From Dicyema japonicum (lineage: Eukaryota > Animalia > Dicyemida), in NCBI GenBank assembly GCA_011109175.1, contig RDEW01000077.1:121133-165531 (forward strand): 44,399 nucleotides of DNA, given 5' to 3'. Shown here piece by piece: positions 2,141 through 44,399 of the stretch; within the stretch, counting starts at the first letter, position 1; each line of letters starts with the position of its first letter. The notes beneath the pieces were generated by a model. The model saw only the letters and a program-made list of their open reading frames with translations. It was not told where the DNA came from and searched no databases. Both the position numbers and the translations under genes were made by a program.

Positions 2141-2149
2141 TTAATATTT

Positions 2150-2410
2150 ATTTAATAGCCACGGATATACTGGAATAAGTTAAGAGCTAATCAACGTCAA
2201 TTAAGGTATATCCAGTTTTCATGGTCAGACTAAAAAGTATCCTTTCCAAGCATCACGTTCATCTATATTCCACATCTGATGGAGTATGGAGGAAAGTGAT
2301 TATTTTTTGGATGTCTAAAGGCACAAGACGTCTCCTAGACAGATGGGTGACATTACGCCTCTTAAGGCTCAGAATGAAGGCAATCTTCAATTCCTTAACA
2401 ATTAATATTT
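2150..2410 (-). mobile_element. Older diverged copy of the SINE-like family (second copy ~21640-21890)
   Basis: Shares aattaaggtatatccagttt, cctagacagatgg and the 3' tail gtatatccgtggctattaaataaat with the 10735-11036 family. Confidence 0.4.
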
Positions 2411-2432
2411 TTTGCATTTTCCTGATATTTAT

Positions 2433-3804
2433 TGTCACCGTCCGTACGTGGAACTCCGCCATACGTGGAACTCGACAAGAACCAATCAAAATAATAATTA
2501 ATTCTCTGGATAATTCAGATTTTTCTGAGTTTAATGGTGTAATTTTTAGTTAAAGTCGTTATTATTTAAAAAACATAAAGTAGCAAAAAAGACAGTCAAT
2601 AGGAATAGAGTGTCAATTTAATGATATTTTATTATTCTTAATTAACAAAAAACTTTATTAATATTAAAAAAAATTATTTTATTTCTACACATGGTTTTAA
2701 GCTTCAAGTTGAACATTGATGAGTTGAGTCAGATAATCGAATATTTTGAAAATGGATATCTTGATGCGTCGCTTTCAAGAAAGAGTATATTTTTGGAATA
2801 CCAAGATTACCATGGGTTCAAGGCCAGTTTGAGAGTTATCATTTATAAAATAATGTATAGTTAAATCAATATCTTAAAAAATGGTTATCATCCGTTTCTT
2901 CTACTGAAGGAATTCTAGGAAAATATCAATGCAGTCTGGGAGATATTGTATTCAGCTACAATATTACCAATCACGAGACCTCCAAACATCTCCCTTCAAG
3001 ATTTCTAATGGAGTGGATTATCCGCCACAAATATCTGATGAACGTTTAAATAGATTACTACAGTATGTAGAAGATGAAGACTTATCTTTGTCACGGGATT
3101 TTGCACGAAGGCATACTTTGGAAACTGTAGAAAAAATGCGAAAGAAAAAAAGATGGAAAATGACGAAGAATCGTTGAATGTAGTAGCAGAGTCATTCTAC
3201 GCAATGGACTGTGATTACAATCAAACAACGAAAAATAGTCTATTATATGAGCAATTGACACTACAGGTTATCTAGTAGTGGATATAAAAGGGATTATGGT
3301 CCACATAGATGGTGGCAACTCTGGAATAATGATAGTCCACCATAGCCGAGTTAAAAATTATTTTAATTGACTTTCCTTCCAAGAAATATTTTTTAATCAT
3401 TTTGGCTTAACGTGGAGATTAGATTTAGTTGTTGATTAGGCATTGATTATTGTTGAAAATTGCTTTAGGGATGAGATCACACTTAGGTATTTTTATGAAA
3501 GGGATTTGAATTCGTCAACGTTATGGTTATAATTAGACTTGGATAGTCAAGGGATAGGGTTTATGATATTTTTAGGTTTATGAATAAAAATTACGGTTTA
3601 AAGTTAGGGTTTATATTTAGGGATAAGGATTAGGTTTAGGCATTAAAATTAGGGATAAGGGTTTAGTTTAGGGTTAGGTTTTGGGTTTAACGGAATATTT
3701 AACTAAATAAATTGGTTTTTTTAACTAAATAAAATGATTAGAGTCAGGAAAAATGTTATAAAAATGCAATAAAATCGATAGAGTTCCACGTACGGACGAT
3801 GACA
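2433..3804 (+). mobile_element. Ginger/TDD-like non-autonomous DNA transposon (TGT...ACA), family 1, copy A
   Basis: 24-bp TIR tgtca(c/t)cgtccgtacgtggaactc with 1 mismatch; 5-bp TSD TTTAT at 2428-2432 and 3805-3809. Internal remnant GDIVFSYNITNHETSKHLPSRF resembles the integrase C-terminal AYNTxxHxTTxxSPF motif. Confidence 0.85.
3596..3690 (+). repeat. Degenerate TTAGGG-like tract inside the Ginger-like element
   Basis: C-poor G/T tract with perfect ttaggg at 3604, 3617, 3649 and 3668 plus variants; about 115 bp inside the right TIR. Confidence 0.7.
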
Positions 3805-3952
3805 TTTATTATTTCAGGAACCCCCAAATGGTAGGGAGAAGTTGATGCCTATTTTCGTTCTTTTCGGAGAGGATGATACTTTTCGGGTGAGCCATAAGAC
3901 ACTAAGTTAAGCACAATTCTAAATTTTTGCCCTAATTTTTTTAAAAGCAAAG

Positions 3953-6900
3953 TAATAATAATAATAACAACACAGAGACCACGGTTACAAAAACTCAGTA
4001 CGCGCTATCTGAGACCTCAACTTGGCTCGATGTTCCTCCCTCGGCCCTCCGATGGTCACATCATCCAGGAACCACACAAGCAAGTATCGGCCGAATGATT
4101 GGATCTATGTAGTCACGACGGCGCCTTCCACATTGGGAGAGAAAGACATTTGAATGTCAAAAGTCACTCCAAGGATTTTTTGAGATCTGCTAAAAGAGAT
4201 AACTCTATGATTTGCTTTCTGATCGACCGTCCGTCTTTCCAGTCTCTTGCCTGATGTAAATAGAGTTGTCGTGGATTTTTCACTGCTGGTAGCTGGCGAT
4301 TTTTCGATAGCCTTTATACAAGACTGTCCAGATTTTGTGCAATATCGAACTACTAATCTGGATGTACTGTTTACGTTACATAATGACATCGTCGTCGGCA
4401 TAAATCAGAAAAATATCATTTTCTAGGTCCGGTGTGGGGGTGATCCTCCATGAATAGATTATTATTATTATTTAAGCCAAAGAAACACCGTCTTAACCAA
4501 TAACTAATATTCAGGTGATCCCGGCATCTCTCAATAATCGGGCCATTTTTTCTCGATGCTCCGACCGTGACCCCACGCATTTTCTATACGGACGGGGTCT
4601 TTTTCCTTTCCTCTTCTGAAATTGCCTCCAGTTGCCTCTATGATAGACTCGAGTGCTCTGTGGGCAATTTCTTTATCTGTATATTTTTCTAGTAACTTTT
4701 TTGCTCTTGACTGGATATCTTGAATTTTTGTTAGGTTCGTTGCCGACAGGTTAGATCCCCATGCAGCACATGCATAGCCTATTGTTTGCTCGACATACTG
4801 CTTGTAGAGGGTCCCGATACCTGGCGGATAAATTCCTCCACAGTTCCAAAGGAAGGCCTTTACAAAATTGATCTTCTTTGCACAGGTTGATATGATAGAT
4901 TCCACATGGGCTGAGAAGCAGAGGAAAGTATCAAAAGTTACTCCCAGTATCTTCTGCGATTTCTTTTGTGGTATAGGTACTCCATTTAACGTGACATCAA
5001 TTGTTTGCGTTCCCATCTTTCTATTCTTAGTAAATAGATTGAATAGTAATGGAGACAAAGGGGATCCTTGGAATATCCTCCTCTGAATGATAATTTTTTA
5101 TAATTAAAAACTTGAATTTATAATTAAATTAAAATAATATTTTAAATCTAAAAAAATTGTTGGTAGTGAATTAACTAAAGAATACGTCCCTCCCTTCATA
5201 ATTGAACGTACAACCTATTTTTGCGAGAAATGCCAGACAATTGTAGACAAATGTATCAAAATTGACAATGAACTTAGTGACATCAACGGAAAATTCAACT
5301 AAAAGTGCGGTGATTTCTCTAAATGGTTGGATTCGCACATTTTGGTTATGAGAGACCAGTTGGATCCCTTTCTTGTGGCATCTACTTAGCCAACGAATGT
5401 ATTTATCATTTCATTTACAAGTAGATGATATGTTCTGTATTTGATGCTATTTCATTCATATCCAAACTGGAGTCGTTCATGAAACTTTTTTAATCCATTG
5501 CATTTTTTTGTATCTAGAAAGAGGAATTGTTCACTATGTGGATCAACATGAAAGGATATCTTTTAAATTATAGCTTTATGTTGATTCGAGGGAATAGTAA
5601 AATAAATGTTCTCAAGTTCAATTTGTTATCCAATGTCCTCATCTAGTGCTCGATAGTACTCAGTATCCACTAATGGATTGGTTTCCTGAACTGCAAGGAC
5701 TGGTTATCCAACCTTTCTCCTGGTTCTGGATGGACTTCTAAGAAAACTATTAACTTTTTTCATGTATTCGAATTTACCTTACGGAGGAGATGCTCAATGC
5801 CTGGCCGGAATCAAGAGGATCCAACTATTCTTCCCCAAGGGACAACGTCGAATAACTCTCACCAAATATAGCCATGGTGGGCTAAGATGTGTTCGAGGTG
5901 GACACTTCCATGGAAGACCAAGCATAACTCACCATTATAACCTGATTTTGTTGCACATGTGTGGTTATAAGTATTATGACTCGTGAAAGTTCTTATTACT
6001 GCTCAGTGCTAACTGGTCACAAAAACCATTCGATTTTCACTTTATTGAGATGGCTTTGTGATATCCCTTTCTCTTCAGACTCCTTTCTAACAATCCTCAG
6101 GATAAATGTTCACTATCCGCAACACCTATCGATTGTAAATCCCAAAGTGAAAATTGCACTTATATATTGGTCGAAGCTTTCTAAAATAGTCCCTACTCCT
6201 GTTTTCTAGGATACTCTTTACTCATGAAATGATCGGCTGGAGGATCTGGTAAAATATTCTTTACAATCGTGAGGAACGGACCGATGGTTGGGGAATATAT
6301 TCTGATTGCTGAACGAACTGGATCTTTAAACGATCGAAATGCTCATTTCAGTACCCCAATCCGAAGAAAGGATAGCTCTACTTTTCTAGATATGTCATCT
6401 TTGGCAAGTATCTTTCATGGAGCGTCTGATATGCTTTCTCTTATGGTCATAACTTGCTTAAGTTAAGGTTCCAAAGATCTCTTTGTGTGCAGAGGTTCAT
6501 TCCGAAACTACCTTCTCACTTGGCCTCATAAGAGAAAGATTTACAAGAACGTAGATGGAGAACTAATACTCTGTAGGTTTCGTGTAGTCACTCAATTCGA
6601 TGATCTCCTAGATAATCAGTTAACCACATTCACAAGTCGAGTCGCATCACTAATGTTTTTGACGTAAAAACTGGTTTCGGTGTTGTGGACATATTACATT
6701 CCTTCGACTTTTCAACCTCTCGGCATACTCGAGCCACAAACTATGGATTGCAACTTTCTCATCCGGGCAACGTGAAATGGCTTTTTATTATAAAAAAGTC
6801 AAGATCTCGACTATCATCAAATAAAGATCCTCATAGCCCCCCACTTTCACCTATACTTCCAACTTATACCATGAATTTATGGATCAGAGTTCTTTGTGTG

Positions 6901-7090
6901 GCTCGGTTAATATGTGGCTTAGTGTATAAAGTTCCGGAAAAAAAACGTAAGATCTCTGTTCGAATCCCGCTGCTGTCCACTCAGCTGAAAGTTCCACGCA
7001 TCTGCAATGCTTTGGGGTTGACGAGTGACGCCGTTATCAGTGTCTCATCACTGTGGAACTGGATTGTCTTCGTGACTCACACACAATAAG
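3953..7090 (-). mobile_element. Decayed APE+RT LINE with (TTA)n-type 3' tail (copy A), interrupted by a younger LINE
   Basis: Tail tgtaaccgtggtctctgtgttgttattattattattac (reverse complement of 3953-3996); KSTTTLFT...QKILGVTFD at 4105-4401; RIFQGSxLSPLLFNL at ~5035-5085; VLRIVNIY APE-like remnant near 6100-6130. Confidence 0.7.
4461..5032 (-). mobile_element. Young 5'-truncated LINE (RT thumb to C-terminus), present only in copy A
   Basis: 8-bp TSD aatagatt at 4453-4460 and 5033-5040; (TAA)n tail; open frame LNGVPIPQKKSQKILGVTFD...YACAAWGSNLS. Copy B shows the empty site ccatgaatagattgaatag at ~23929-23947. Confidence 0.9.
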
Positions 7091-7899
7091 TCAATAATAC
7101 TTTCAATGTCTCTGATATGGCTTGGATTAATTAATTAACATTACTCTTTTTAAAATAAAGCGCGAGTTCTGCCTAAGGTGGGATTACGTAATGGAAACAT
7201 TACCCACTCTTGCCGGGAGGGCTGTTTAAAAAAATTCTTCTTTTATTCGTAAGTGAAATCAAGATATCAAAAGATCCTTGATTTCACTTACTATAATTAA
7301 GGACTTTTCACCTCATCTTGAAAAAGTCATGACTACCTCCTAAAAACTGCGTTGACCCTTGAACGCTCTAATGATAGGATACTCCTGATCTGCATGGAAT
7401 TTCGACCTTTCCCTTCGAGGATTGAGAATACCAATTTAATCCAATGGAAACCTTCCGTCTTCCTTTATTCCCCATCTCTCGTCAACCTTATATCAGAAGA
7501 GTCCACAAGAAACAACGGTCTTTTATACGTCTCTGCAAACAACCAGGAAACCTATTTTGAAACAAAATCGATCATGCAGATGAACACTAATAGAAACTTC
7601 ATAGTTAAAAGCAACACAGTTAAATTATAAATCAAAGATTTAATTGATAAAGGTTTGATAAATCCTGCACTTTCAATAATGAAGAAATATTAATATAAAC
7701 AAATATTATTTTATCTTATTTAAAATATAAGAATATATCAAAATATAAAGCGTACGCCCACAAGGAGCAATGATAACGTTTATGTAATAAATTATTGATG
7801 ATGGTTGACCATATTAAAATATATATTTTAATTAATATAATTAAATAAATTATTTTATTAATTTGAGTCATTATTGTGGCTATTGTTAATTTTGTATGT

Positions 7900-15592: not shown

Positions 15593-16517
15593 ACAGAACG
15601 AACGATAATGATCCAAAAGTGACGTAATAAACCATACTTTCTCACGTCTCTATATTCAATGTTCCCGTTGTCCAAATCATGGACACCTTGGTCGAAATAA
15701 GCTTAGAACCGCACAATCTCTGCATCTCTGCCAAATTGGTCATACCTCTCATGCCTTGAGAATCACAGAAGGCAGAAGGAGCCCTCCTCTGGACCTGTCC
15801 TGGGCCTATATAACACGGATGAATGTCTACGCCGTTTGATTCAGCTTGAGTCGGAGAGGGTAACCTACTTAGGATTCCAAGGTCTGCGCGTCTACAGCTA
15901 CCTCCTGTCTTTCAAAGCTAATCCCAAGGCAGTCGATGACAAAGCTCAAATGCCTGGATATGCCTTCTCTGATTTGCACCTCTTGTCGCCTGATTACATC
16001 TGATCTCGATAATTTGGACACAAAATCCTTGTACTGTCTTCATTTTGTATGTCAAAGTGAATTCGATCTCACATAAATGGAAAAATTCGAGTATCACTCC
16101 TAATTTAAAACTAGACAACCTAGAGTCTCATCTTCTTCCCATCACCCGATATCCATGACAACTGTCTATCACACCTCCTGGAGAAACTCGTGTTGTGAGA
16201 AATTACTTATGACTTGTTTAAGTACCCTTCCAACACGGTTTCAAATCGAAAGGTTGAACTACAACGCATCTTGCTAACTTACTCACCGGGTGCAAAGGTC
16301 ACGTGCATCGGGAACGACATATATGTACAATCATTTTCCCTTAATCTAGACCTCATTGGAATCGAACATGCTTTTAGTGTTCTATAGTATTTCCTATAAT
16401 CAAAGAGTGAAAGGATGGTTGGATATGGAACTAAATGGGGGACTTTGTTTCAAAGCTACAAACTGAAAATATTGAAAGTGACTTTGAATCACCATATGAA
16501 GAACGTTCTGATAAGTG

Positions 16518-18196
16518 ATAAACGATAACGATAAAACACTTTATTAAGCAAAAAATAATAGTAAGTAATTAGGGAAGAACTATTTAAGGGCTTTTTAACC
16601 GCCTTGCGGCAGCGTTTTCGTCCCATTTCTTTCGTCTTCTCCGTGCCTCCTTCTTTAGTTAAATTTTAATATCTTTTTGATCACTTCCTCCGGGTCCTTA
16701 AAATCAAGGTATCCTCTTTCCGGCAGCGGCGCTCTATAAGACATTCCTAGAGAATACCGTATTGTCCGCCGCCGAACCTTCCTAAGGTTCGTGAGGCACT
16801 TTTCGCGTTCCTCAGTGCGATACCAGGAGTGCGCACCATAATTGTCAGCATAGGCAGCACCATGGCGTTGAACACTTTGGCCCAGGCATCGCGGCTCAGC
16901 TGAAAAGCCCTCAGCGCTCCTAGTATTTGCACAGCCCGCCTCTTAACGAGGGCGGTGTGCTCCTGGAAACTACACTTGGAGTTGAACGTCACTCCAAGGT
17001 AGCTCGTCCGCCCAGTGACCTCTATAGGTACCCCATATATGGTCACTCTAGGTATTAAATTATTAGACCGCTTAGGGCGGCCAAAACTAATAACCTGCAT
17101 TTCTCGGTCTCAGCCTGAGTCCTCTGCTCCCACACCGGCGTATGATTTCATCGACAGCGACTTGAATCCTCCGACACGCCACATCTGGTTTCCACGAGTG
17201 ATCTCAGAGTACTATGTCGTCCGCATAGACAGCCATCTCCGTCCTCACATTGGCTGGGTGAGGGAGTGTAGACAGGTATATGTTAAAAGGGTAGGGCTCA
17301 GAACCGACCCTTGAGGAACTCCCCGGTTAGATCTAAACAAACTAAATCGGCAACCTTTATGCCTTACGTAGTTCATCCGATCCTCTAAGAAGCTTGACAA
17401 CCAGCTCCTTAGTTCCAGGGGAATTCCTCCTTCAACAAGGGCGCATCGGAAGCCGTCATGCCAGACCGAGTCGAACGCTCTCTCCACATCCAGAACAGTG
17501 CGGCTGTGCACTCCTTCTTACTCCTTTCACGAATCTGAGAGCTCAACCTCCAAAGGCAGTCCCCAGGAACGCCCCTCACGGAATCCCATCTGAAGGTCCG
17601 AGAGGGTGTTTCTTATTATGCATTCCTGGGTTAACCTCTGGTGTATCACTCTCTCTAAGATTTTAGCAACGGCAGGCAACAGGATTATAGAGCGGTAGCT
17701 ACTAGGGTCTTCAGGAGGTTTTCCTGGTTTCCTTACAAAAACCAGTTCCGCTTCTTTCCAACGCCTAGGAACGTAACCCAACCTGAAGCTACCGTTGTAC
17801 AACCTTACCAAGGTCGCTAGAAGACTTGCAGGCCCTTTCTTGAAAAGGGCCATAGGGATCTTGTCCTGGCTCGGTGCGTTGTTCTTCGACCGGACCTCCT
17901 CCTCAGTTATATACGTCATGTTCGGGTTCCCTCGAAAGTGGCTCCGCTTGCGCCTTTCCGTAGAGATGACGTCCTCAATACTTTGGCGGGCAGACCTTTC
18001 GACGAATTTGTCCGGTCGAACTGCAGTGACTGCCTCAAAGCTACCTGCGAAGATGCGAGGTTTTAGAACCATCCACACGACACAGGGTACGCGAAGACGA
18101 CTCTTCCCCTCTGCCCGACAGGCGCTTCAGTTGAATCCAGAAGTCCGGCCATGCGGGGTTCACCCTCTCGCAGGCCCCCTCCATTTGTCGCTATGG
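16518..18196 (-). mobile_element. Jockey-like LINE, 5'-truncated, frameshifted RT
   Basis: VPRRWKEAELVFVRKPGKPPEDPSSYRSIILL, QMGFREGRS, LDVERAFDSVWHDG, GVPQGSVLSP, YLGVTFN; AATAAA followed by a (TTATCG)n tail at 16518-16545. Confidence 0.9.
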
Positions 18197-18968
18197 AATT
18201 TATTATAACATAATAATCTTATAATTTACAAGATTTCCTATCGATAACGACAATAGTCAACCAATAACGACAATAGTCGATCAATAAATGACTCATCAAC
18301 CAAAAACAGTGGGGCCTGTTTACAGCAAACAATCAGATCGATTCCATCAGTTAGAAATAGAAGCCGAAGAGTCAGGAAATACTTCAAGAGGTCACAACAT
18401 TCGCAAATCGCCTAAAAAGAGAACATCGCAAAAATAGAAGAATTGTGGGGACGTTGAAAGACACCAAAAATTTATTTTGTTTTTTATATATTTATTACCT
18501 CAGGATCACTAGATTAAAAGAAAAAGGAATGTCCTCAGCTAACTAAGTGGTCTCAAAAACAACTTGTGAGGACGGGGATCATGAACTTTCATTGAGTAAG
18601 GAGTCAACCTAGATTTTTGGGGGTTTTCAAGTTATTTGAGAATAATTTTCAGGGAGCCCTTTTGAAAGGCTGACCACTTTACAAATTTCCTTCGTCGTTC
18701 AAGTAGAAGTGCTTCAAGAAAAATAAACTTCAAAATTATGACCGATGACTCTAATGGCGTTTTCCTGAATTGCGGATAACTTATGCAGGGAAAAAGGGGA
18801 AATTAGCATAGATCCGTTTTGACGTCATAAATGACTTAGATAGTAGAGAAGCGTCTAGTGTTTATTTTGAGAGTTTTTGAGATGATCTTTAGAACTGTCA
18901 TTCTCCCAGTATGCGGCCACCAGCTTTTTGGCATTTCTCGCAAAAAGATAGTTTTGGGTAGAATATTA

Positions 18969-20675
18969 TGTCACATGGGCCAAGCGTTACCTATGGGCAG
19001 CCTGTTACATTAACCTTGAACCAAGATTAACTTCAATTAATTTTATAAATAATTTATTAACCACAAAAAATTAAATTTAAGTAACTTTTTTTAGTCTACT
19101 CATTAATACACTCGATATTTCTCCTTTCGAATTTTTTATCTATCAAATTAAACTATTTAAAACTACCTCCACGCGATTATTCGATAAAATATTAATTATT
19201 TATGCAACTGGATAATACTGAGACTCAAACTTATCCAGTCGCAATGAGGGATTTGTTCCAAAGTCCTTTTTAGCCCGAACCTATTTATTAATGTTTTTGA
19301 TTCATACTTTATCTCCCATGTTAAAAGTATATTTACTATTATGAACATTCATTTTCCTGTTCATAGCTTTGTAATAATTCAAATTTTCTTCAATCGATTT
19401 AATTTCGAATTGAATCTCTTCGCATTCGGACACAAATTATCTGACTGGGAATTATCTAGATATAAATTTTTTAAATCAAACTACGTGAATTTTCAATAGA
19501 TTCTGGAGTCGAACAATTAACCAAATCGTCAATTTGTTCTGGAATCGCACACTCATCACTTAAATTATCTAAGTCATAATGTGATATAAGTATAACCATT
19601 AATTATTGAATTTATTCCCTTAATTCCTCGATATCTTTCGAAAGGACTTTCGTTAGAAAATGAATGGACCGATATGTTGTAACTGTAGACAGCACTTTCT
19701 AATTCATCAAGCCACTTTTTTTCACTGTTATCCAGCATTTTTGACAACTTCCTCGTGATCGTCTGATTCTTTCGACAATTCCTTGTGCTCGTGGATTGTT
19801 AGGCCTTCCGTGAATTTGCTTAATGTTAAAATCTCCGCAAAGTTTTGTTATTTCTTGATTTTTAAATTCAGAACCATTGTCCGACTGAAGAAATTTACAT
19901 GGCCCATTCAGGCGGAACAAAGATCTTAAGTTTTCACATACTTCTTTACCAGCGAAAATTTGCAGACTTCACAATTTCGAATGACTTTTCTGATAATCTC
20001 ATTCTTTACAGTGAAGTATCTGTGTCGACATTCATACTCAATTTTATTGACTCCTCCGTGTGAAAACTTGTGCAACGATTTCGCAACATGCTCCATTTCG
20101 GTTTCATTATCCAGGGATATGACTAACTTGGGATCAGTTGATTTAAGATAGTCTAAAATTATTGAAAATTTACAATACCTGTCATTGATAATAGAAAAAT
20201 TCTCTATCTTCTTTACAAGCCTATATTTTCGGTGTCTCGGAAGATTTTCGGGAAATTTATCAGCAAAGCATCTTTTAAAGTTTGATATTCAACGCAATCT
20301 TTCACAAAACCCTTGTAAGAAGCCATTGCAACAAAATAATCTTCCATGCTATAAATCACGCTAGAAATCTAGGTTTACCGCTATAAAAAAATAAAATCTT
20401 TATAATCATAACATTTATGAATAAAAAACTAATTTAACAGAATTAAATCACGATATAAATCGGATATATAAAATTAAATGTCGGATAATCCAATAAGTGA
20501 CTCATCCTCACCTTTGTCGGTCTGGGATCACTTAGTTAGATGAGAATTTTTATTTCTTTCTTTTTGACCCAGTGATCCTGGGGGTAATAATAATAATGTC
20601 GGATAATCAAAAGACCTTTTCAAGGTCGAAAAAATGTAACAGGCTGTCCATGCGTTACGCGCCGCCCATGTGACA
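18969..20675 (-). mobile_element. Ginger2/TDD-like integrase DNA transposon (TGT...ACA), family 2, internally deleted
   Basis: 43-bp TIR (36/43 identical) starting tgtcacatgggc; 5-bp TSD TATTA at 18964-18968 and 20676-20680; empty site gaatattactc in copy A (~1183-1193). Integrase HHCC (HKFSHGGVNK...CEVC) and core LQSDNGSEFKN...GRPNNPRAQGIVER. Confidence 0.9.
20491..20594 (+). mobile_element. 104-bp truncated retroelement tail nested in the Ginger-like element
   Basis: Flanked by the direct repeat aatgtcggataatc (20477-20490, 20595-20608); ends in (TAA)n; contains ctgggatcactta shared with the 12730 family. Confidence 0.65.
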
Positions 20676-21915
20676 TATTACTCCCATTATGTTTCTGCGT
20701 GATATTTAGGAAGATGTTTAGCTTTGTGTTGTAGTGTCTTTTACATGTAGAAGGACTTCGTTGGGATACTTTGAGTCGTAATTGAGCAAACCATTGGATC
20801 AGTGTCCAACTACCTATTGGCTGCTAGATGATCACTGGCAGTGAGGACTATACCATCAGGGACACCAGGATTATATTTTTATCAGTAGATCGTGTCATCT
20901 CATGTTGCATGGATAGAAGATGTCGTTGAAAGTGGAAAACTTTGGAGAATTTCTTATCAGAGAGATGTCTTCACTAAATCGCATGACGTTCTTGTGAATC
21001 GATGTATCAAAGGTTATAGTTATCAGTCTTAGGATTCAGGGACCATCTGCTTTTGTTCCATGATGGAATCAAAATATATTGAGTTATTTATTTATAGACT
21101 TCTGGAAGACATGATACAACTATTGGATCCTTTTGTCTTAATATTCTCTAGATCTTTGTGGTCTTGGAAAAATTTTTGAGATGCAGAGGCATATAATTTG
21201 ATCGGAATATTTGAATGAAGATCCATTTTGAGGTTCAACAGTTGATCTCTTGAGAGACTTATTTTGTGTTCCCAACCTATTTTATAAGGATTTCAAATGA
21301 GAAGTCAAAGGGGTTTATCAATATGTCACGTGGGAACTATTTGGATACTCAGGTTGACATTTAAAAATTTTCCTTTCTTATCATTGGCTTGTCCCAGGAA
21401 CTAGACGGGATGATTAGCATTAAAGTCTTTGCAAATGAACAGGTAAGGTAAGAAATATCAAAGTGATGTCTTACTAAGTTTAGGATCGTGCTATTAACCT
21501 CCTTTATATTCAATTGAAAGATTGGGCATGAGTTTGCACTTATGTCATTGACATAGGCTCTCTTTAGGATCAATCCATTTTAAAGGATAGGAAAGTACGT
21601 CAACACATCAGTGACACACGTGACATTAATATTATTTTAATAGCCACGGATATACTGGAATGAGTTAAGAGCTAATCAACGTCAATTTAGGTATATCCAG
21701 TTTTCATGATCAGACTAAGAAGTATCCTTTCCAAGCATCACGTTCATCCATATTCCACATCTGATGGAGTATGGAGGAAAGTGATCATTTTTTGGATGTC
21801 TAAAGGCACAAGACGTCTCTAGAAAGATGATGACATTACGCCTCTTAAGGCTCAGAATGAAGGCAATCCTCAATTCCTTAACAATTAATATTTTTTGCAT
21901 TTTCCTGATATTTAT

Positions 21916-23305
21916 TGTCACCGTCCGTACGTGGAACTCCGCTATACGTGGAACTCGACAAGAACCAATCAAAATAATAATTAATTCTCTGGATAATTCA
22001 GATTTTTCTGAGTTAATGGTGTAATTTTTAGTTAAAGTCTCGTTAATATTTAAAAAACATAAAGTAGCAAAAAAGACATTCAATATGAATAGAGTGTCAA
22101 TTTAATGATATTTTATTATTCTTAATTAACAAAAAACTTTATTAATATTTAAAAAAAATTATTTTATTTCTGCACATGGTTTTAAGCTTCAAGTTTAACA
22201 TTGATGATTGGCGTCAAATAATCGAATATCTAAAAAATGGATATTTTGATGCTTCGCTTTCAAGAAAGAGTATATTTTTGGAATACCAAGATTACCATGG
22301 GTTCAAGGCCAGGTTGAGAGTTATCATTTATATAATAGTGTATAGGTTAAATCAATATCTTAAAAAATGGTTATCATCTTTTTCTTCTACTGAAGGAATT
22401 CTAGGAAAATATCAATGCAGTCTGGGAGATATTGTATTCAGCTATAATATTACCAATCACGAGACCTCCAAACATCTCATTTCAAGATTTTTAATGGAGT
22501 GGATTATCCGCCACAAATATCTGATGAACGCTTAAATAGATTACTACAGTATGTAGAAGATGAAGACTTATCTTTGTCACGGGATTTTGCATGAAGGCAT
22601 ACTTTGGTAGCTCCAGAAAAAATGCGAAAGAAAAAAGATGGAAAAATGACGAAGAATCGTTGAATGTAGGACAGTCATTCTACGAATGGACTGTGATTAC
22701 AATCAAACAACGAAAAATGGTCCATTATATGAGCAATTGACACTACAGTTTATCTAGTAGTGGATATAAAAGGAATTATGGTCCACATAGATGGTGGCAA
22801 CTATGAAATAATGATAGTCCACCATAGCCGAGTTAAAGATTATTTTAATTGACTTTCCTTCCAAGAAATATTTTTAATCATTTTGGCTTAACGTGGAGAT
22901 TAGATTTAGTTGTTGATTAGGTATTGATTATTGTTGAAAATTGCTTTAGGGATGAGATCACACTTAGGTATTTTTATGAAAGGGATTTGAATTCGTCAAC
23001 GTTATGGTTATAATTAGACTTGGATAGTCAAGGGATAGGGTTTATGATATTTTTAGGTTTATGAATTAAAATTACGGTTTAAAGTTAGGGTTTATATTTA
23101 GGGATAAGGGATTAGGTTAGGTTTAGGGGTTTGGGATAAGGTTTAGGGTTTGGGATTAGGGTTAGGGATTAAGGATACGTTTTGGGATTAACGGAATATT
23201 TAACTAAATAAATTGGTTTTTTTAACTAAATAAAATAATTAGAGTCAGGAAAAATGTTATAAAACTCCAATAAAATCGATAGAGTTCCACGTACGGACGA
23301 TGACA
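21916..23305 (+). mobile_element. Ginger/TDD-like family 1, copy B
   Basis: Same 24-bp TIRs and TTTAT TSD (21911-21915, 23306-23310) as 2433-3804. Confidence 0.85.
23075..23192 (+). repeat. Degenerate TTAGGG-like, G-run-rich tract (copy B)
   Basis: gttagggtttatatttagggataagggattaggttaggtttaggggtttgggataaggtttagggtttgggattagggttaggg. Confidence 0.7.
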
Positions 23306-23454
23306 TTTATTATTCAGGAACCCCCAAATGGTAGGGAGAAGTTGATGCCTATTTTCGTTCCTTTCGGGAATGGATGATACCTTTTCGGTTGAGCCATAAG
23401 ACACTAAGTTAAGCACAATTTCACATTTTTGCCCTAATTTTTTTAAAAGCAAAG

Positions 23455-25975
23455 TAATAATAATAATAACAACAACAGAGACCACGGTTACAAAAACTCA
23501 GTACTCGCTATCTGAGACCTCAACTTGGCTCTATGTTCCTCCCTCGGCCCTCCGATGGTCACATCATCCAGGAACCACACAAACAAGTATCGGCCGAATG
23601 ATTGGATCTATGTAGTCACGACGGCGCCTTCCACATTGGAGAGAAAGACATTTGAATGTCAAAAGTCACTCCAAGGATCCTTTGAGATCTGCTAAAAGGG
23701 ATAACTCCATGATTTGCTTTCTGATCGACCGTCCGTCTTTCCAGTCTCTTGCCTGATGTAAATAGAGTTGTCGTGGATTTCTCACTGCTGGTAGCTGGCG
23801 ATTCTTCGATAGCCTTTAGACAAGACTGTCCAGATATTGTGCAATATAGAAGCACGTTACGTAATGACAACGTCGTCGGCATAAGTCAGAAAAATATCAT
23901 TTTCTACGTCCGGCGTGGGGGTGATCCTCCATGAATAGATTGAATAGTAATGGAGACAAAGGGGATCCTTGGAATATCTTCCTCTGAATGATAATTTTTT
24001 ATAATTAAAAACTTGAATTTATAATTAAATTAAAAATAATATTTTAAATCTAAGAAATTTGTTGGTAGTGAATTAACTAAAGAATACGTCCCTCCCTTCA
24101 TAATTGAACGTACAACCTATCTTTTGCGAGAAATGCCAGACAAATGTATCAAAATTGACAAAGTGACATCAACGGAAAATTCAACTAAAAGTGGGGGTGA
24201 TTTCTCTAAATGGTTGGATTCGCACATTTTGGTTATGAGAGACCAGTTGGATCCCTTTCTTGTGGCATCTACTTAGCCAACGAATGTATTTATCATTTCA
24301 TTTTCAAGTAGATGATATGTTCTGAATTTGATGCCCCTTCATTCATATCCAAACTGGAGTCGTTCAGGAAACTTTTTGAATCCATGTATTTGCATTTTTT
24401 GTATTTAAGAAGTGGAATTGTTCACTATGTGGATCAACATGAAAGGATAGCTTCTAAATGATAGCTTTATGTTGATTCGAGAGAATAGTAAAGTAAATGT
24501 TCTTAAGTTCCACTTGTTATTCAATGTCCACATCTAGTGCTCGATGGTGCTCAGTATCCACTAATGGATTGGTTTCCTGAACTGCAAGGACTGGTTATCT
24601 AATCTTTCTCCTGGTTCTGGATGGAGTTCTGAGAAAACTATTAACTTTTTTATGTATTCGGATTCACCTTACGGAGGAGATGCCCAATGCCTGGCCGGAA
24701 TCAAGAGGATCCAACTATTATTTTCCTGGGGACATGTCGAATAACTCTCAACCAAATATATCCATGGTGGGCTAAGATGTGTTCGAGCTGGACACTTCCA
24801 TGGAAGACCAAGCATAACTCACCATTATAACCTGATTTTGTTGCACATGTGTTGTTATAAGTATTATGACTCGTGAAAGTTCTTATTACTGCTCAGTGTT
24901 AACTTGCCACAAAAACCATTCGATTTTCATTTCATTGAGATGGCTTTGTGATATCACTTTCTCTTCAGACTCCTCTCTAACAATCCTCAGTCTAAATGTT
25001 GACTGTATCCGCAACACCTATCGACTGTGAATCCCAAAGTGAAATTGCACTTATATATTGGTCGAAGCTTTCTAAAACAGTCCCTACTCCTTGTTTTCTT
25101 GGATACTCTTTACTCATCAAATGATCGGTTGGAGGATCTGGTGAAATATTCTTTACAATCATGAGGAACTGACCGATGGTTGGGGAATATATTCTGCTGG
25201 CTGAACGAACTGGATCTTTAAACGATCGAAATGCTCATTTCAGTACCCCAATCCGAAGAAAGGATAGCTCTACTTTTCTAGATATGTCATCTTTGGCAAG
25301 TATCTTTCATGGAGCCGTCTGATGCTTTCTCTTATGATCATAACTTGTTTAAGTTAAGTTCCAAAGATCTCTTTGTGTGCAGAGGTTCATTCCGAAACTA
25401 CCTTCTCACTTGGCCTCTTAAGAGAAAGATTTACAAGAACGTAGATGGAGAACTAATACTCTGTAGCTTCCGTGTAATCATTCAATTCGATAATCTCCTA
25501 GATAATCAGTCAACCACATTTACAAATGAAGTTGATCACTAATGTGATTGACGTAAAAACTGGTTTCAGTGTTGTAGACATATTACATGCTTTCGACTTT
25601 TCCAATCTCTCGGCATACTCGAGCCACAAACCATGGATTGCAACTTTATCTTCCGGGCAACGTGAAATGGCTTTTTATTATAAAAAAGTCAAGATCTCGA
25701 CTATCATCAAATAAAGATCCTCATAGCCCCCCACTTTCACCTATACTTCCAACTTATACCATGAATTTATGGATCAGAGTTCTTTGTGTGGCTCGGTTAA
25801 TAAGTGGCTTAGTGTAAAAAGTTCCGGACAAAAAACGTGAGATCTCTGTTCGAATCCCGCTGCTGTCCACTCAGCTGAAAGTTCCACGCATCTGCAATGC
25901 TTTGGGGTTGACGAGTGACGCCGTTATCAGTGTCTCATCACTGTGGAACTGGATTGGCTTCGTGACACACAAAAA
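23455..25975 (-). mobile_element. Decayed LINE, copy B of 3953-7090 (uninterrupted)
   Basis: Colinear with copy A; reads RIFQGSPLSPLLFNLFMEDHP across the site that is interrupted in copy A. Confidence 0.7.
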
Positions 25976-26199
25976 GTCAATAATACTTTCAATGTCTCTG
26001 ATATGGCTTGGATTAATTAATTAACATTACTCTTCTTAAAATAAAGTGTGAGTTCTGCCTAAGGTGGGATTACGTAATGGAAACATTACCCACTCTTGCC
26101 GGGAGGGCTGTTTAAAAAAATTCTTCTTTTATTCGTAAGTGAAATCAAGATATCAAAAGATCCTTGATTTCACTTACTATAATTAAGGACTTTTCACCT

Positions 26200-27250
26200 C
26201 ATCTTGAAAAAGTCATGACTACCTCCTAAAACCTGCGTTGACCCTTGAACGCTCTAATGATAGGATACTCCTGATCTGCATGGAATTTCGACCTTTCCCT
26301 ATCGAGGATTGAGAATACCAATTTAATCGAATGGAAAACCTTCCGTCTTCCTTTATTCCCCATCTCTCGTCAACCTTATATCAGAAGAGTCCACAAGAAA
26401 CAACAGCTTTTTATACGTCTCTGCAAATAACCAGGAAACCTATTTTGAAACAAAATTGATCATGCAGATGAACACTAATAGAAACGCCCTTAGTAGAGCT
26501 ACTTTGATCGAGTTCTTTCCAGACGTATTGCCTTGAAATAATGTGATTGTTGATGTACTGAATGAGAGGAGTCTGAAAATTGAATTTATCCTTATTGGAT
26601 TCAACTGAAGACTCTTATCTCTTCTGTGATATTCGCAAAGTGTTCGACGTCGTTTCTGGTAGAAACTAACTTAAAAAATCCTAATCGGAAATCCTTGGAA
26701 ACTTTAAACTCACGTTGGAAAATTTTTCATTACTTGAAGGGACCGAGGTAAATAAATAAATGATATCTTTCTTGTTTGAATTCTACATGATTGCAGCTGA
26801 GTTGGCCACTGTCGATGACCTGAGAACTTTTTTTCTTACGTATTTAGGAACGAATTCTCATTTAAAGAGTTACTTCCTGTTAAAATTAATATCCATGCAA
26901 AACAGGATCGTTAGACCGACATGATGGATAGACTCATTGACTTTATAGATGTTTTATGTAATCTGAGGTCAAAATTGTCTCTATCTCTCTTGGAGAAACA
27001 AATTGAGTGCATCTTTTGAGGTACTAAATCGACATATCACATATATAGTTGAAGACCAACTGAGTTAAATCGAGGTAACTCATAAATTATGAAAATTTTG
27101 AAGTCAAGGGGTCAACATCAAAACAAGTGAGTCCCTCATTGACCTGTTATAACTTTGTTGATGTGAAGCAAACTATTACGGAGCGTCTAGGATTTAGTAC
27201 AATACCGTGAAGCTACCTTGATGTTATGTCTGATTCACGACTTTTCTTAA
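26200..27250 (+). mobile_element. Decayed LINE RT (its 5' part is also at ~7310-7597)
   Basis: CDIRKVFDVV (RT domain 3) near 26625-26655, with downstream degenerate RT remnants. Confidence 0.5.
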
Positions 27251-39449: not shown

Positions 39450-40230
39450 AAAAGACATTTCTCGCATTAGTGTACCACTTCAACCTTCAGACCCCCAATA
39501 TATTCAAAAGAAGTTAAGAATTCGTTAGGGAGTCCGATTTCAATAACAATAGCTTCCCTCTCGTATCGGCCTGTTGGGTTAACAACCATAATTGATGCTT
39601 TCCATTTAAATCTCCACAAATGATGATCTTATCGTAGATAGCCAATCTTGATAGGTTTGAAATAACATAGTCCTTTGGGCAGGAGCCGGGAGGAGGCAAA
39701 TACATATTCACGAGGCACAGACTTCCTTTCGTTGTCTTAAGCGAGATTCCAATTGCCTCAGTAACCTCGTCATTTCCAACAAGTTTTTTCACTTCCGAAG
39801 TAATGTCTCTGTATTTCAGGTTCTTTTTGAATAGAGTAAGTAGTCCACCCCCTCTTCTCTTTTTACGGTCCATCCTGATAGCCTCGTATCCAGGGAATAA
39901 ATGAGTGGGATTATTCATGCGGAGTTTAGTTTCTTGAATCATGGCCACGTCGATCTTCTGATTTGCCAGGATTGAATAAAGTTCCCTGACCTTGTTTTTA
40001 ATTCCGTTGATGTTCAATTGGAGAGTAGTAAATTTCCTTTCTCCACAGTGGGCTGAGGGTTTACGCCGGGAATATTTGGACTTTTTTGAAGCACATCGCC
40101 GGGGGTCGATAATGACCCCGGGAGGAAATGGTCTAATGGTCCTTTTTGGGAGGGCATTAGAAGCCCTCTAGGCGTTGCCAAATCCTTTTGAATTTTTTGA
40201 ATTGGTGGACCACATAACGCCACGCTACAG
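39450..40230 (-). mobile_element. LINE 5' part with a well-preserved APE endonuclease domain
   Basis: LQLNINGIKNK...DVAMIQETKL...RMDRKKRRGGGLL...LVNMYLPP...ICGDLNGKHQLW. Confidence 0.9.
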
Positions 40231-40610
40231 TTATTTAAACAATTTCAGATAGACCCTACATCCCTAAGCCGCCTTCGGTCGCTGTTCTTCAGATAGACAC
40301 AGCGTTCATCAATCAAAGTATGATTTTCCGTAATTCGTGGATTATCATAACTTGCATTAATATCAATTTTGGTGAATTAGTGGGTTGATTGGGTTGAAAA
40401 CCATTTACAGTTTGCCTGATCAGAAATTTGGAAACGGTATCTTGGTTCTCATCCAATTGCCACACAAACTATTTGATAAAAAAAAAAGTTAGACCTGTTG
40501 ACAACACATGCAGGCGACCCACATTAAAATCTTGTCTTGATGTCATAATATATCCCATATGATAGATAAACTGCGACGAGCACAAATTTGAGTTAAAAGA
40601 GTAAATTTTT

Positions 40611-40885
40611 TTAAGAAAAATCCGTGTTAAGCGGAATCTGAAGGGAAAATAAGTCATCCGTACGCAATGTTGCATGGGGAATTTTTCTAAAGGAGTCGAC
40701 AATCCGACCACGTGGAAGTGAGTGCACTCCGCATTCATTGAAAGAAATTTATCAGCCTTAAGGACTTTGTTATTGCAAAATGTAATTTGAGCAGATCTCC
40801 CACTGAGATAATTTAACGAGTGAAGAAAATCATTACATAATTTACCTGCTAATTCTTTTTTTTGAATTTTGTCAACAGTCAACAT
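40611..40885 (-). CDS. GEMIN7: Gemin7-like SMN-complex protein, intronless, with a 1-nt frameshift at ~40681-40686 (pseudogene or indel error)
   Basis: MLTVDKIQKKELAGKLCNDFLHSLNYLSGRSAQITFCNNKVLKADKFLSMNAECTHFHVVGLSTPLEK, then +1 nt gives IPHATLRTDDLFSLQIPLNTDFS*. By eye this aligns to remembered human Gemin7 YLRSLLAMVG...F...FYVSQLQTPIG...ALLRCSDIIS. Length 275 nt = 3n-1. Confidence 0.7.
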
Positions 40886-40989
40886 TAATTGCCACAAAGT
40901 AAAAATATTTAAAATTCAAATTTTACATATCAAAATAACATATATTATAAATAGAAGATAAAGATTATTGTGTTATCGTTTTTAAATGG

Positions 40990-41810: not shown

Positions 41811-41889
41811 AAATTGGCCCAAAATTGTTCCTGAACTATTTGTGGCCAGTTTGGGAATTTGAAACGTCTGGGTTCTTTTTTTTAATTTT

Positions 41890-42400
41890 AATTTAAAAAC
41901 CAAGAATCACCGACAAAACAAAGGAAGGTAGTCAGATGATCTCGGCCCTTTTGAGCAGTCGCCTCATTTTTCCTCGGTGTTCCTCCCGAGTGCCGACACA
42001 CTTCCTGTACGGACGAATCACTTTTCGGAAGTTTATGGGTTTTGGCTGAGCTTCCGTTCTCCTCACGAGTTCCTCGAACGGAGTTAGTTTTAATGACGAC
42101 GAGGAGGATCTTTGTAGGGTTTTCGTTACTGTCTCTTAGAAGGAGTTTAATTTTTTTAGGTTGGTGTGGGATATGTTAGTACTCCATGCCGCGAGCAGTA
42201 ACTGATTGACGGAAGTATATATTGGTTGACCTTCTACCTGAACAAATCTTCTGGTAGAGGTTACATTATGAAAACTATTGCGCCAAATATTGAAGTTATG
42301 TCCGCGATGGTAGAAATGGAAGAGGTCGGACCTACTTCTCCATCTCTCTTCGGAAGCCTGTAGTGTACTATTGGAGGATGGATTTGGTCGGCACAAGCAA
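41890..42400 (-). mobile_element. LINE 3' fragment related to the 4461-5032 type
   Basis: YILPSISYC / AAWSTNISHTNLKKL parallels YACAAWGSNLSATNLTKI. Confidence 0.55.
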
Positions 42401-42544
42401 ATGTTCTCCCTTGGGTTCCTTCCTTAGAGTGGTCGTTATGACTGTTTGTGCTGGGCTTACCGTAAGCGTGGGGTTAATAATAAACTATACAATACAACTT
42501 AGCTAACACTAAAGATTTACAAGAATGAAAATGTCCCCAATCAA

Positions 42545-43077
42545 TTATGACTTATTTAATCTTTTGTTAGCCAATTCATGACATGTCATTTTCTAATAAT
42601 AATAAATACTACCTTTGTCAGTTTATCCATTTCATCCTTTTGTCTATTTACTGCAATATAATATAAAAACATACACAACTCCTTAATATATAAATGAGGG
42701 GGATATGTGTGGGGGAAGTATACTCTCTATAATAATTATAATATTAACCTGAGGGAAGTTTGATCCATATTCATCAATCTTCAAAAACTGAATAATTTTC
42801 TCATAAATACTGTAATAAGTGCTAATATTACCATGGATTTCTAAAGTCCTTCCTAGACATTGCTTCATTTAAATCATAACCATTCTCTGCATAATTATCA
42901 AATTTATTCTATATTATAATTTTTATTACTTTTAATTCTGATGAAATGTTATTTAATTTATTATTTGACTCACATTCCATTTCATTGCACTCCTCATTAT
43001 GCTGTATCTAATAATAAATAATAATAAACATCATCCATTTCATCCTCGGAATTATATGATATTATTAATTTATCCAT
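42545..43077 (-). CDS. SAP30BP: SAP30-binding protein (HCNGP family), 7 exons, 133 aa
   Basis: Exons 43077-43030, 43007-42930, 42908-42832, 42809-42749, 42726-42675, 42650-42613, 42592-42545; GT-AG introns of 22, 21, 22, 22, 24 and 20 nt. Spliced core RKDFRNPCIYEKIIQFLKIDEYGSNFPQRVYFPH...QKDEMDKL matches remembered HCNGP KKEFRNPSIYEKLIQFCAIDELGTNYPKDMFDPH...QKIEMDKL. Confidence 0.92.
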
Positions 43078-43283
43078 GTCACACAATATTACTTATTTTT
43101 AAATTAATATTATTTTTTAATATATATTTGAGTTTTTATTATTACCAATAATAAATAATAATAAACATCATCAATTTCATCCTCGGAATTATATGATATT
43201 ATTAATTTATCCATGTCACACAATATTACTTATTTTTAAATTAATATTATTTTTTAATATATATTTGAGTTTTTATTATTACC
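43010..43283. repeat. Tandem duplication, 2 x 137 bp, covering the upstream region, exon 1 and most of intron 1 of SAP30BP
   Basis: catcctcgga at 43041 and 43178; one substitution seen (ATG GAT vs ATT GAT). Confidence 0.92.
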
Positions 43284-44010
43284 AAAACTTTAGTTGACTC
43301 TAGTTGACGTTTGAAAAAATCAGTTCATTACAAGAGAAAAATACGTTCTATACGACGTCTAATTGGCACTCGTTCTTTCCTGCTGGAATCGTCAAGAAAC
43401 AGTAAATCCAAATGTGTTTCCATGTCACTACCGGGAAATGGTCAGTTCTTCTTGAGACGTCACCCTTATTTCGATATTTATTAGAAGCTTATCTGAGTCG
43501 CACATGAAGCAATAATGATTATCATGTCTTAGAAGTCTTAATCAAGATATTTTTGGAGGTGGAATGTGATGAAAGTAATTGTAATGATGAGCACTTATAT
43601 TTCTGCATCTACAAACTGTAAATACATCACCCCCAAACATTGAATAGGCCTGTTTCGCGTGGAGATTTGCGATGTCCTCCCCAAGACTGATAAAATAAAC
43701 TCAATCAAACGAAGCACTTTGCATCTTATTCCTGCATCTATCCATCTCGCCCCCACCACTCTCAAATTCAAGAGAAACCATTTGATGATGATGCTAAGCA
43801 AGAAAATGTACTAGTATTAACCGATTGAGTTCCTTTGTATGAATTCACTGTACATTTTATGTAACACATAAAATCCCGCAAGGAGAGTTGTGGATTATTT
43901 GAAACTGTGAACACATAATTATTGGTTATTAATATATTTATTGTTGGTGATTAGGTTTTCTAATAATAATATTGTAAATGACAAGATATTGAATAAAGTA
44001 AAGTGAAAGA

Positions 44011-44399
44011 TTAAGGTGGTCCCCATATAATGACCTTCTCATCATCTGAACAACTAGCAATCATCATGTGATTGATAGGATTCCAGTGAACAGCATTAAC
44101 AGTAGCCTTATGTTGATCAAGTTTAAAAATGGTTTTATTTTTGTGAATATTCCAAATACAAACGTGATTATCTAAAAAGAAAGAAGGTAGAACTTTGAGA
44201 GCCAGAAGCAAAGAATGATTGTCCAAGTCCTCCAAATGATGCTCTAATATTGAATATAGAAATATTAGCACCAATAAAAGTATTAAGTTTAACCTTATTC
44301 CTAAAATCCCACAAAGTAATAGTCTATTGAATAATATAAAATATACAGAATTATTTAAAGAGAGTAAAAGATATTCTTCTAAGGAATCAAACTCAATGG
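44011..44399 (-). CDS. WDR26: WDR26/GID7-like WD40 protein, last three exons (5' part outside the window)
   Basis: Introns 44324-44346 (23 nt) and 44172-44193 (22 nt). Spliced: ITLWDFRNKVKLNTFIG...FNIRASFGGLGQSFFASGSQNNHVCIW...HKATVNAVHWNP...IASCSDDEKVIIWGPP*, matching the WDR26 end (SCFGG...FIASGSEDHKVYIW...GHTRTVNCVSWNP...ASASDDGTVRIWGP). Confidence 0.85.
   Translation of the reverse strand, partial: IEFDSLEEYLLLSLNNSVYFILFNRLLLCGILGIRLNLILLLVLIFLYSILEHHLEDLDNHSLLLALKVLPSFFLDNHVCIWNIHKNKTIFKLDQHKATVNAVHWNPINHMMIASCSDDEKVIIWGPP

Follow-up and report, generated by a model that had tools for sequence, protein, structure and literature searches.

Ultra-short GT-AG introns in a SAP30BP-like gene and a WDR26 orthologue of the dicyemid Dicyema japonicum

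We analysed a stretch of 44,399 nucleotides (nt) of the Dicyema japonicum genome (contig RDEW01000077.1 of assembly GCA_011109175.1, positions 121,133 to 165,531; in the following, the window), near the end of which two genes are interrupted by eight segments of only 20 to 24 nt. Gene 1 is an HCNGP/SAP30BP-like gene, gene 2 the 3' end of a WDR26 orthologue. Judged from gene structure, homology and a sample of other genes, the eight segments appear to be dicyemid micro-introns in ordinary nuclear genes, with U2-type splicing as the likeliest way of removal; we put the probability of this reading at about 0.9. Directly observed in the window are the anatomy of the introns and homology that runs across three of the junctions. 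The introns belong to the micro-intron class already published for D. japonicum. They are thus a correct rediscovery and nothing new, and the novelty implied by an earlier note on this DNA was overstated.

Structure of the two genes

The reading phase was followed exon by exon with a script that carried split codons over the junctions. This tracking returned the eight GT-AG introns proposed in the earlier note with identical lengths: 22, 21, 22, 22, 24 and 20 nt in gene 1, and 23 and 22 nt in gene 2 (Table 1). The seven exons of gene 1 measure 48, 78, 77, 61, 52, 38 and 48 nt and sum to 402 nt with the stop codon, in agreement with the reported density of six introns within 402 coding nt. Two of the gene 1 introns have a length divisible by three (3n introns) and behave as had been described: the 21-nt intron, in phase 0, ends in an in-frame TAG, and the 24-nt intron, in phase 1, is open throughout. 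The G+C content of the window introns is 17%, that of the exons 29%, and position +3 is occupied by A in five of the eight introns and by T in the other three.

Homology across the junctions

Single exons or stop-free read-through segments served as queries in the homology searches. Gene 2 is already in frame at the window edge and is interrupted by a run of N directly past base 44399. The top match of its exon 2 among solved structures is human WDR26, residues 534-575. Exon 3 aligns with residues 579-627 of the same protein and matches Pfam WD40 (E = 1e-6); for this last exon generic WD40-repeat proteins score above WDR26, which is the best single-stretch match. Over the 22-nt intron the alignment with human WDR26 is gapless (575 | 576 | 577, split codon plus two unaligned residues).

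The 23-nt intron was judged with the help of a second copy of the locus on another contig, C90, where the WDR26 gene is complete. Two exons of the C90 copy match human WDR26 at residues 195-323 (E = 3e-11) and 459-519 (E = 3e-8), and WDR26 is the only significant match for either of them. With these exons the 23-nt intron is collinear with human WDR26 to within one residue. Altogether four exons (195-323, 459-519, 534-575 and 579-627) follow the human protein collinearly, first through the CTLH/CRA region and then through the WD40 repeats, and for three of the four WDR26 is the top or the only significant match. A frame-maximising model of the C90 gene contains six further introns of 22, 23, 22, 21, 24 and 21 nt. 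The 3' part of this model is wrong, a shifted frame staying open there, and its first six introns alone were used.

For gene 1 the homology is concentrated in exon 4. Its 20 residues alone match positions 45-64 of Pfam HCNGP (PF07818) with E = 2e-4 and 22.2 bits, against a cut-off of 26.3 bits. Among solved structures only human SAP30BP chains match, with 14 of 20 residues identical. Exons 2, 3 and 5+6, searched singly against Pfam and solved structures, gave nothing specific; the exons other than exon 4 are too short or too divergent for detection singly. A profile search of the contigs revealed a single HCNGP-like locus in the genome, present as two near-identical copies. A weak third match on contig C322 was rejected, as it does not look like the HCNGP family. 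SAP30BP is the closest characterised relative of the predicted gene 1 product.

Removal of intron 3 creates the sequence KDFRNPCIYEK, in which K, R, N and K are spaced across the junction as K157, R160, N161 and K167 are in human SAP30BP. The exon 4 alignment fixes the K of IYEK to K167, and the other three residues, matched by their spacing, would be the counterparts of K157, R160 and N161. According to a 2026 cryo-electron microscopy paper, residues 98-215 of SAP30BP wrap around cyclin L and these four residues touch CDK11. Further downstream, exons 5 and 6 together with the split codon provide 30 residues, and 30 positions of the HCNGP profile remain past exon 4. The two counts match, as would be expected with intron 5 removed. 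The gene 1 model comprises 133 residues compared to 308 in human SAP30BP and keeps the core motif that contacts cyclin L and CDK11. Its exon translations contain no tryptophan. Since there is thus none after the core motif, the RBM17-binding motif of the human protein (U2AF ligand motif, ULM, with W257) has no counterpart in the model.

Checked exon by exon, the earlier statement that an exact, conserved alignment is restored by every intron holds for WDR26 intron 2 and, to within one residue, for WDR26 intron 1. For introns 1, 2, 5 and 6 of gene 1 the evidence is frame continuity and the features of the intron class; around intron 2 of gene 1 neither flanking exon has homology support.

The same intron class in conserved genes

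We compared the window introns with introns located by homology elsewhere in the genome, using Pfam matches of chaperonin (Cpn60_TCP1) and proteasome genes as anchors. Where adjacent matches lay in different frames, the GT...AG pair that best fitted the gap in profile coordinates was taken, which provided 34 clean introns. In-frame stops within a match were taken as 3n introns that had been read through (23 introns), and stop-free matches with an unexplained insertion that held an A+T-rich GT...AG segment added three stop-free 3n introns. The GT-AG ends of these 60 introns are a condition of the procedure and not an outcome, as only GT...AG pairs were considered.

The lengths of the 60 introns fall between 21 and 29 nt with a mode at 24 nt (21 nt, 3 introns; 22 nt, 9; 23 nt, 13; 24 nt, 20; 25 nt, 10; 26 nt, 1; 27 nt, 3; 29 nt, 1), and their G+C content is 32%. 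Position +3 is A in 47% and T in 33% of them, and position -3 is T in 50%. Counted from the 3' end, A peaks at positions -7 (52%) and -8 (42%). The eight introns of the window fit this class and lie at its A+T-rich end. Estimates from coordinates only for five more families (HSP70, AAA, DEAD, MCM and ATP-synthase) also cluster at 22-26 nt; insertions could not be counted reliably in the noisy DEAD-box table, as real loop insertions are numerous in this family. In length, in ends and by comparison with this sample, the segments are thus supported as ultra-short spliceosomal introns of the kind that the earlier note had listed for dicyemids. Its description of them as lacking a shared 5' consensus beyond GT and any visible polypyrimidine or branch-point motif needs one correction: the consensus is indeed reduced and a polypyrimidine tract nearly absent, but a weak branch-point-like A is found at -7/-8. 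As a separate observation, CACGTG occurs in two inferred chaperonin introns (L031/L043 C57:263632-263656 and L028 C157:586272-586294) and in one exon flank.

Splicing mechanism

A conventional U2-type spliceosome would be the likeliest machinery to remove the micro-introns from the pre-mRNA, because the genome holds U2, U1-like and U12 small nuclear RNA (snRNA) genes. In Rfam searches of the genome U2 was matched at full length at least 17 times and U12 once (C79:163471-163599, 85 bits), both above threshold, and 12 U1-like matches came out just below it. Recognition might proceed by intron definition, with both splice sites and the branch A held at almost fixed distances, such that length and position would stand in for most of the sequence consensus. 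The signals left for such a spliceosome to read are GT(a/t) at the 5' splice site, (t)AG at the 3' splice site and a weak A some 7-8 nt upstream of the intron's 3' end. The specificity that the sequence lacks would then come from the narrow range of lengths and the near-fixed place of the A, in line with Hadjez et al. 2026 (PMC13644364).

A second copy of the locus

Positions 41887-44399 of the window recur on C90 (L010, L013; C90:842835-854999) with 96-98% identity, both genes included. Gene 1 on C90 has lost one nucleotide of exon 5 (window position 42717) and one of intron 5. The frame of this copy could be restored by an AG that lies two bases past the intron 4 acceptor. Positions 42996, 42981, 42717 and 42687 of the window are among those that distinguish the copies. 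The window copy carries a tandem duplication of two 137-nt units that are 99% alike; the unit takes in the 5' flank of gene 1, its exon 1 and the greater part of intron 1, and the upstream copy has an ATG of its own at 43214. In the C90 copy there is one 137-nt unit only and no tandem duplication. The two copies may be alleles, a duplication or assembly redundancy.

Alternative explanations

Several observations weigh against the eight segments being micro-introns of ordinary nuclear genes. No transcript-derived protein was found for either gene, and four of the six gene 1 introns (1, 2, 5 and 6) are placed by frame continuity and class features. Among 1.84 billion representative proteins nothing matched the translation that runs from exon 5 through intron 5 into exon 6, and a word search with an 87-residue frame that includes the last WDR26 exon was likewise empty. 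Neither blank is informative, as the word search reaches only proteins of 0.55-1.75 times the query length. All 12 U1 matches lie just below the Rfam gathering threshold (best 69.0 vs 69.5 bits; e.g. C24:884201-884347), and a divergent U1 might be related to the minimal 5' splice signal. Intron 5, being 3n and stop-free, could be coding or partly spliced. The locus is moreover present twice (C351 and C90) with the window copy at an assembly gap, such that one of the two may represent a haplotig or a duplicate in decay. The most general objection would be that the whole pattern arose from chance GT...AG pairs that join open frames in A+T-rich DNA, GT and AG both being frequent. A dynamic programme that allowed GT-AG introns of 20-24 nt found a longest ATG-to-stop frame of 426 nt in the gene 1 region, where the longest frame without splicing is 186 nt. 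Among control tiles from the transposon-rich rest of the window 4 of 140 also reach 402 nt, whereas none of 300 shuffles did so (mean of the longest spliced frame 121 nt, maximum 345 nt). For three window exons and two C90 exons human SAP30BP or WDR26 is the best or the only specific structure match, in collinear order. Homology thus effectively refutes chance, which we consider extremely improbable as an explanation.

A more limited, though improbable, objection is that not all of the eight segments are introns. Intron 5 might be translated into eight residues, or a downstream start might leave introns 1 and 2 in untranslated or non-genic DNA. The longest frame of 426 nt is in fact the 402 nt plus the retained stop-free intron 5; as its retention adds eight codons and leaves the frame open, the frame alone is no proof of its splicing, and exons 1, 2, 3, 5 and 6 had no significant match singly. 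All eight segments nevertheless share length, ends and A+T richness with the 60 independent introns, the 24 nt of intron 5 are the modal length of that sample, and exons 5 and 6 would supply the right number of residues for the rest of the HCNGP profile only with intron 5 removed. A different objection accepts the introns as a class and doubts that the window copies are working genes: they would belong to a haplotig left uncollapsed or to a segment recently duplicated from the C90 locus, in repeat-rich DNA next to an assembly gap. The high identity of the two copies, the run of N that interrupts the window WDR26, the 137-bp tandem duplication confined to the window copy and the three exon substitutions between the copies, all of which change an amino acid, speak for it. 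On the other hand the frame of gene 1 is intact in the window and the exon deletion belongs to C90, Lu et al. removed allelic scaffolds with HaploMerger, and the roughly seven differences in gene 1 are too few for any statement on selection. We regard this objection as unlikely, though with a chance that deserves to be taken seriously. The reading of the segments as dicyemid micro-introns in ordinary nuclear genes is thus the one that we adopt.

In-frame stops in introns of 3n length

Introns of 3n length are not depleted in the anchored set, where they make up 26 of 60. In this set and the window together 24 of 28 such introns hold an in-frame stop, compared to 15.6 expected (P about 4e-4). 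The expectation was derived from 40 non-3n introns in a length-adjusted, phase-aware manner, which put the probability of a stop at 0.73 in phase 0, 0.28 in phase 1 and 0.58 in phase 2. The sample is a small one and stop-free cases are counted imperfectly; P would rise to 0.02 if five of them had been missed and to 0.15 if ten had, such that five to ten missed cases would remove the effect. The tables for the AAA, HSP70, MCM and ATP-synthase families point in the same direction, with at most five stop-free candidates vs about 28 introns with a stop. A statement that every 3n intron has a stop would be partly an artefact, because a 3n intron can be found by frame alone only when it holds a stop. 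With homology as the anchor this bias largely disappears, because a stop-free 3n intron then appears as an insertion of about eight residues.

The excess of in-frame stops is suggestive and may be new; no account of 3n introns in dicyemids was found in the papers searched. A rule for 3n introns has reportedly been described in Paramecium by Jaillon and colleagues, in Nature in 2008. Tentatively, and at somewhat less than even odds, the 3n micro-introns of D. japonicum may be tolerated but selected for an in-frame stop, so that retention would end translation early, possibly with UPF1-dependent surveillance. The Paramecium safeguard would then have a second instance, in an animal. Under such selection, intron 5 of gene 1 and other stop-free 3n introns would either be exceptions that are tolerated or serve as alternative coding sequence. 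The genome contains a UPF1 zinc-binding domain (G000:C223:925975-926400, reverse strand, 179.5 bits). Within the UPF1 match lie two in-frame stops and about nine additional codons, the pattern that a 3n intron leaves when it is read through. The genome profile search detected no UPF2 or UPF3 domains, which is uninformative as short exons can escape it. The locus illustrates how a genome-wide test of stops in 3n introns can be designed without the ascertainment bias of introns found by frame only.

Surroundings of the genes in the window

The rest of the window had been called 40 kb of transposable element debris. This is roughly right, as fragments of long interspersed nuclear elements (LINEs) and dispersed repeats are found there, but remains of host genes occur as well, e.g. 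an open reading frame (ORF) similar to Gemin7 (Table 1). Gemin7 is an assembly factor of small nuclear ribonucleoproteins. Positions 1-7597 are duplicated internally at 16248-26485 in four collinear pieces of about 90-94% identity, and eleven further stretches of the window recur within only 168 kb of sampled genome. An Rfam scan of the window gave no family matches, and the ORFs in the spacer between genes 1 and 2 had no Pfam match.

Table 1. Positions in the window of the two genes, their introns and neighbouring features.
Feature	Position	Strand	Details
HCNGP/SAP30BP-like gene (gene 1)	42545..43077	-	ATG at 43077, stop ends 42545; 133 codons
Gene 1, seven exons	43077-43030, 43007-42930, 42908-42832, 42809-42749, 42726-42675, 42650-42613, 42592-42545	-	Placed by frame continuity
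Gene 1 intron 1	43029-43008	-	22 nt, GT-AG, phase 0; needed for the frame from the ATG; without homology support
Gene 1 intron 2	42929-42909	-	21 nt (3n), GT-AG, phase 0; 3' TAG is an in-frame stop
Gene 1 intron 3	42831-42810	-	22 nt, GT-AG, phase 2; split codon TG|T
Gene 1 intron 4	42748-42727	-	22 nt, GT-AG, phase 0; directly after the HCNGP-matching exon 4
Gene 1 intron 5	42674-42651	-	24 nt (3n), GT-AG, phase 1; no in-frame stop
Gene 1 intron 6	42612-42593	-	20 nt, GT-AG, phase 0; frame continuity only
WDR26 orthologue, 3' end (gene 2)	44011..44397	-	Exons 44397-44347, 44323-44194, 44171-44011 (stop)
WDR26 intron 1	44346-44324	-	23 nt, GT-AG, phase 0
WDR26 intron 2	44193-44172	-	22 nt, GT-AG, phase 1; split codon A|AT
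Tandem duplication	43010..43285	.	Period 137 nt, two copies, 99% alike
RVT_1 (LINE reverse transcriptase fragment)	17530-18078	-	Pfam
Exo_endo_phos (LINE endonuclease domain)	39517-40017	-	Pfam
Gemin7-like ORF	40472-40897	-	142 residues; Pfam Gemin7, E = 1e-7, 32.3 bits vs 25 cut-off

Comparison with known micro-introns

Ultra-short introns of dicyemids have been in print since 2010, those of D. japonicum being published as the shortest among animals, and the window adds little to them as a discovery. Ogino et al. 2010 (Gene 449:70), as represented in Zverkov et al. 2019, reported extreme intron shortening in 40 genes of D. japonicum; the study reportedly also describes intron positions as conserved with other animals. 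For Dicyema sp. Zverkov et al. 2019 (PMC6543705) gave a median intron length of 27 bp. Lu et al. 2019 (PMC6736024) described a D. japonicum assembly of 67.5 Mb in 377 scaffolds with 48.9% repeats and, in an annotation guided by RNA-seq, 6.2 introns per gene with a mean length of 38.2 bp; the published annotation comprises 5,012 genes and about 31,000 introns. The assembly used here has 67,542,437 bases in 377 contigs. In a survey of 51 animal genomes by Hadjez et al. 2026 (PMC13644364), introns below 30 bp were found outside the myxobolids only in D. japonicum. Of its 5' signal only GTa is left and of its 3' signal only AG, which is preceded by two or three weakly conserved A.

The window introns share with these published introns the organism, the assembly, the GT-AG ends at a length of about 20-30 nt, the reduced splice signals with a weak A before the AG, the high intron density and a genome with 49% repeats. 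The published mean of 38 bp (Lu 2019) and median of 27 bp (Zverkov 2019) compare to a mode of 24 nt in our sample of conserved genes; nothing essential differs. The earlier note was right that tiny introns stand beside abundant repeats, a combination already published for this 49%-repeat genome. What the window offers is a clean worked example, with six introns per 402 coding bases in a homologue of a human splicing factor for short introns.

The myxobolid myxozoans are parasitic animals as well, with median introns of 22-27 bp and reduced splice signals (Hadjez et al. 2026). Their micro-introns originated independently, within the Cnidaria, and transposable elements are relatively few there, whereas repeats make up half of the D. 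japonicum genome. A resemblance of another kind exists to the human short introns that depend on RBM17/SPF45 and SAP30BP (Fukumura et al., bioRxiv 10.1101/2022.12.30.522300), as one of the two window genes is a SAP30BP homologue. We note this as a coincidence and not as evidence. The human introns are much longer, and the Dicyema model is without a counterpart of the RBM17-binding motif (W257).

With Paramecium D. japonicum has in common that its introns are tiny and that in our sample the 3n introns hold in-frame stops above expectation. It differs in that the sampled 3n introns are not depleted, 24 nt being even the modal length, and in that stop-free 3n introns exist. If the stop rule were true for D. 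japonicum, it would bear on how splicing errors are policed where the splice signals carry almost no information.

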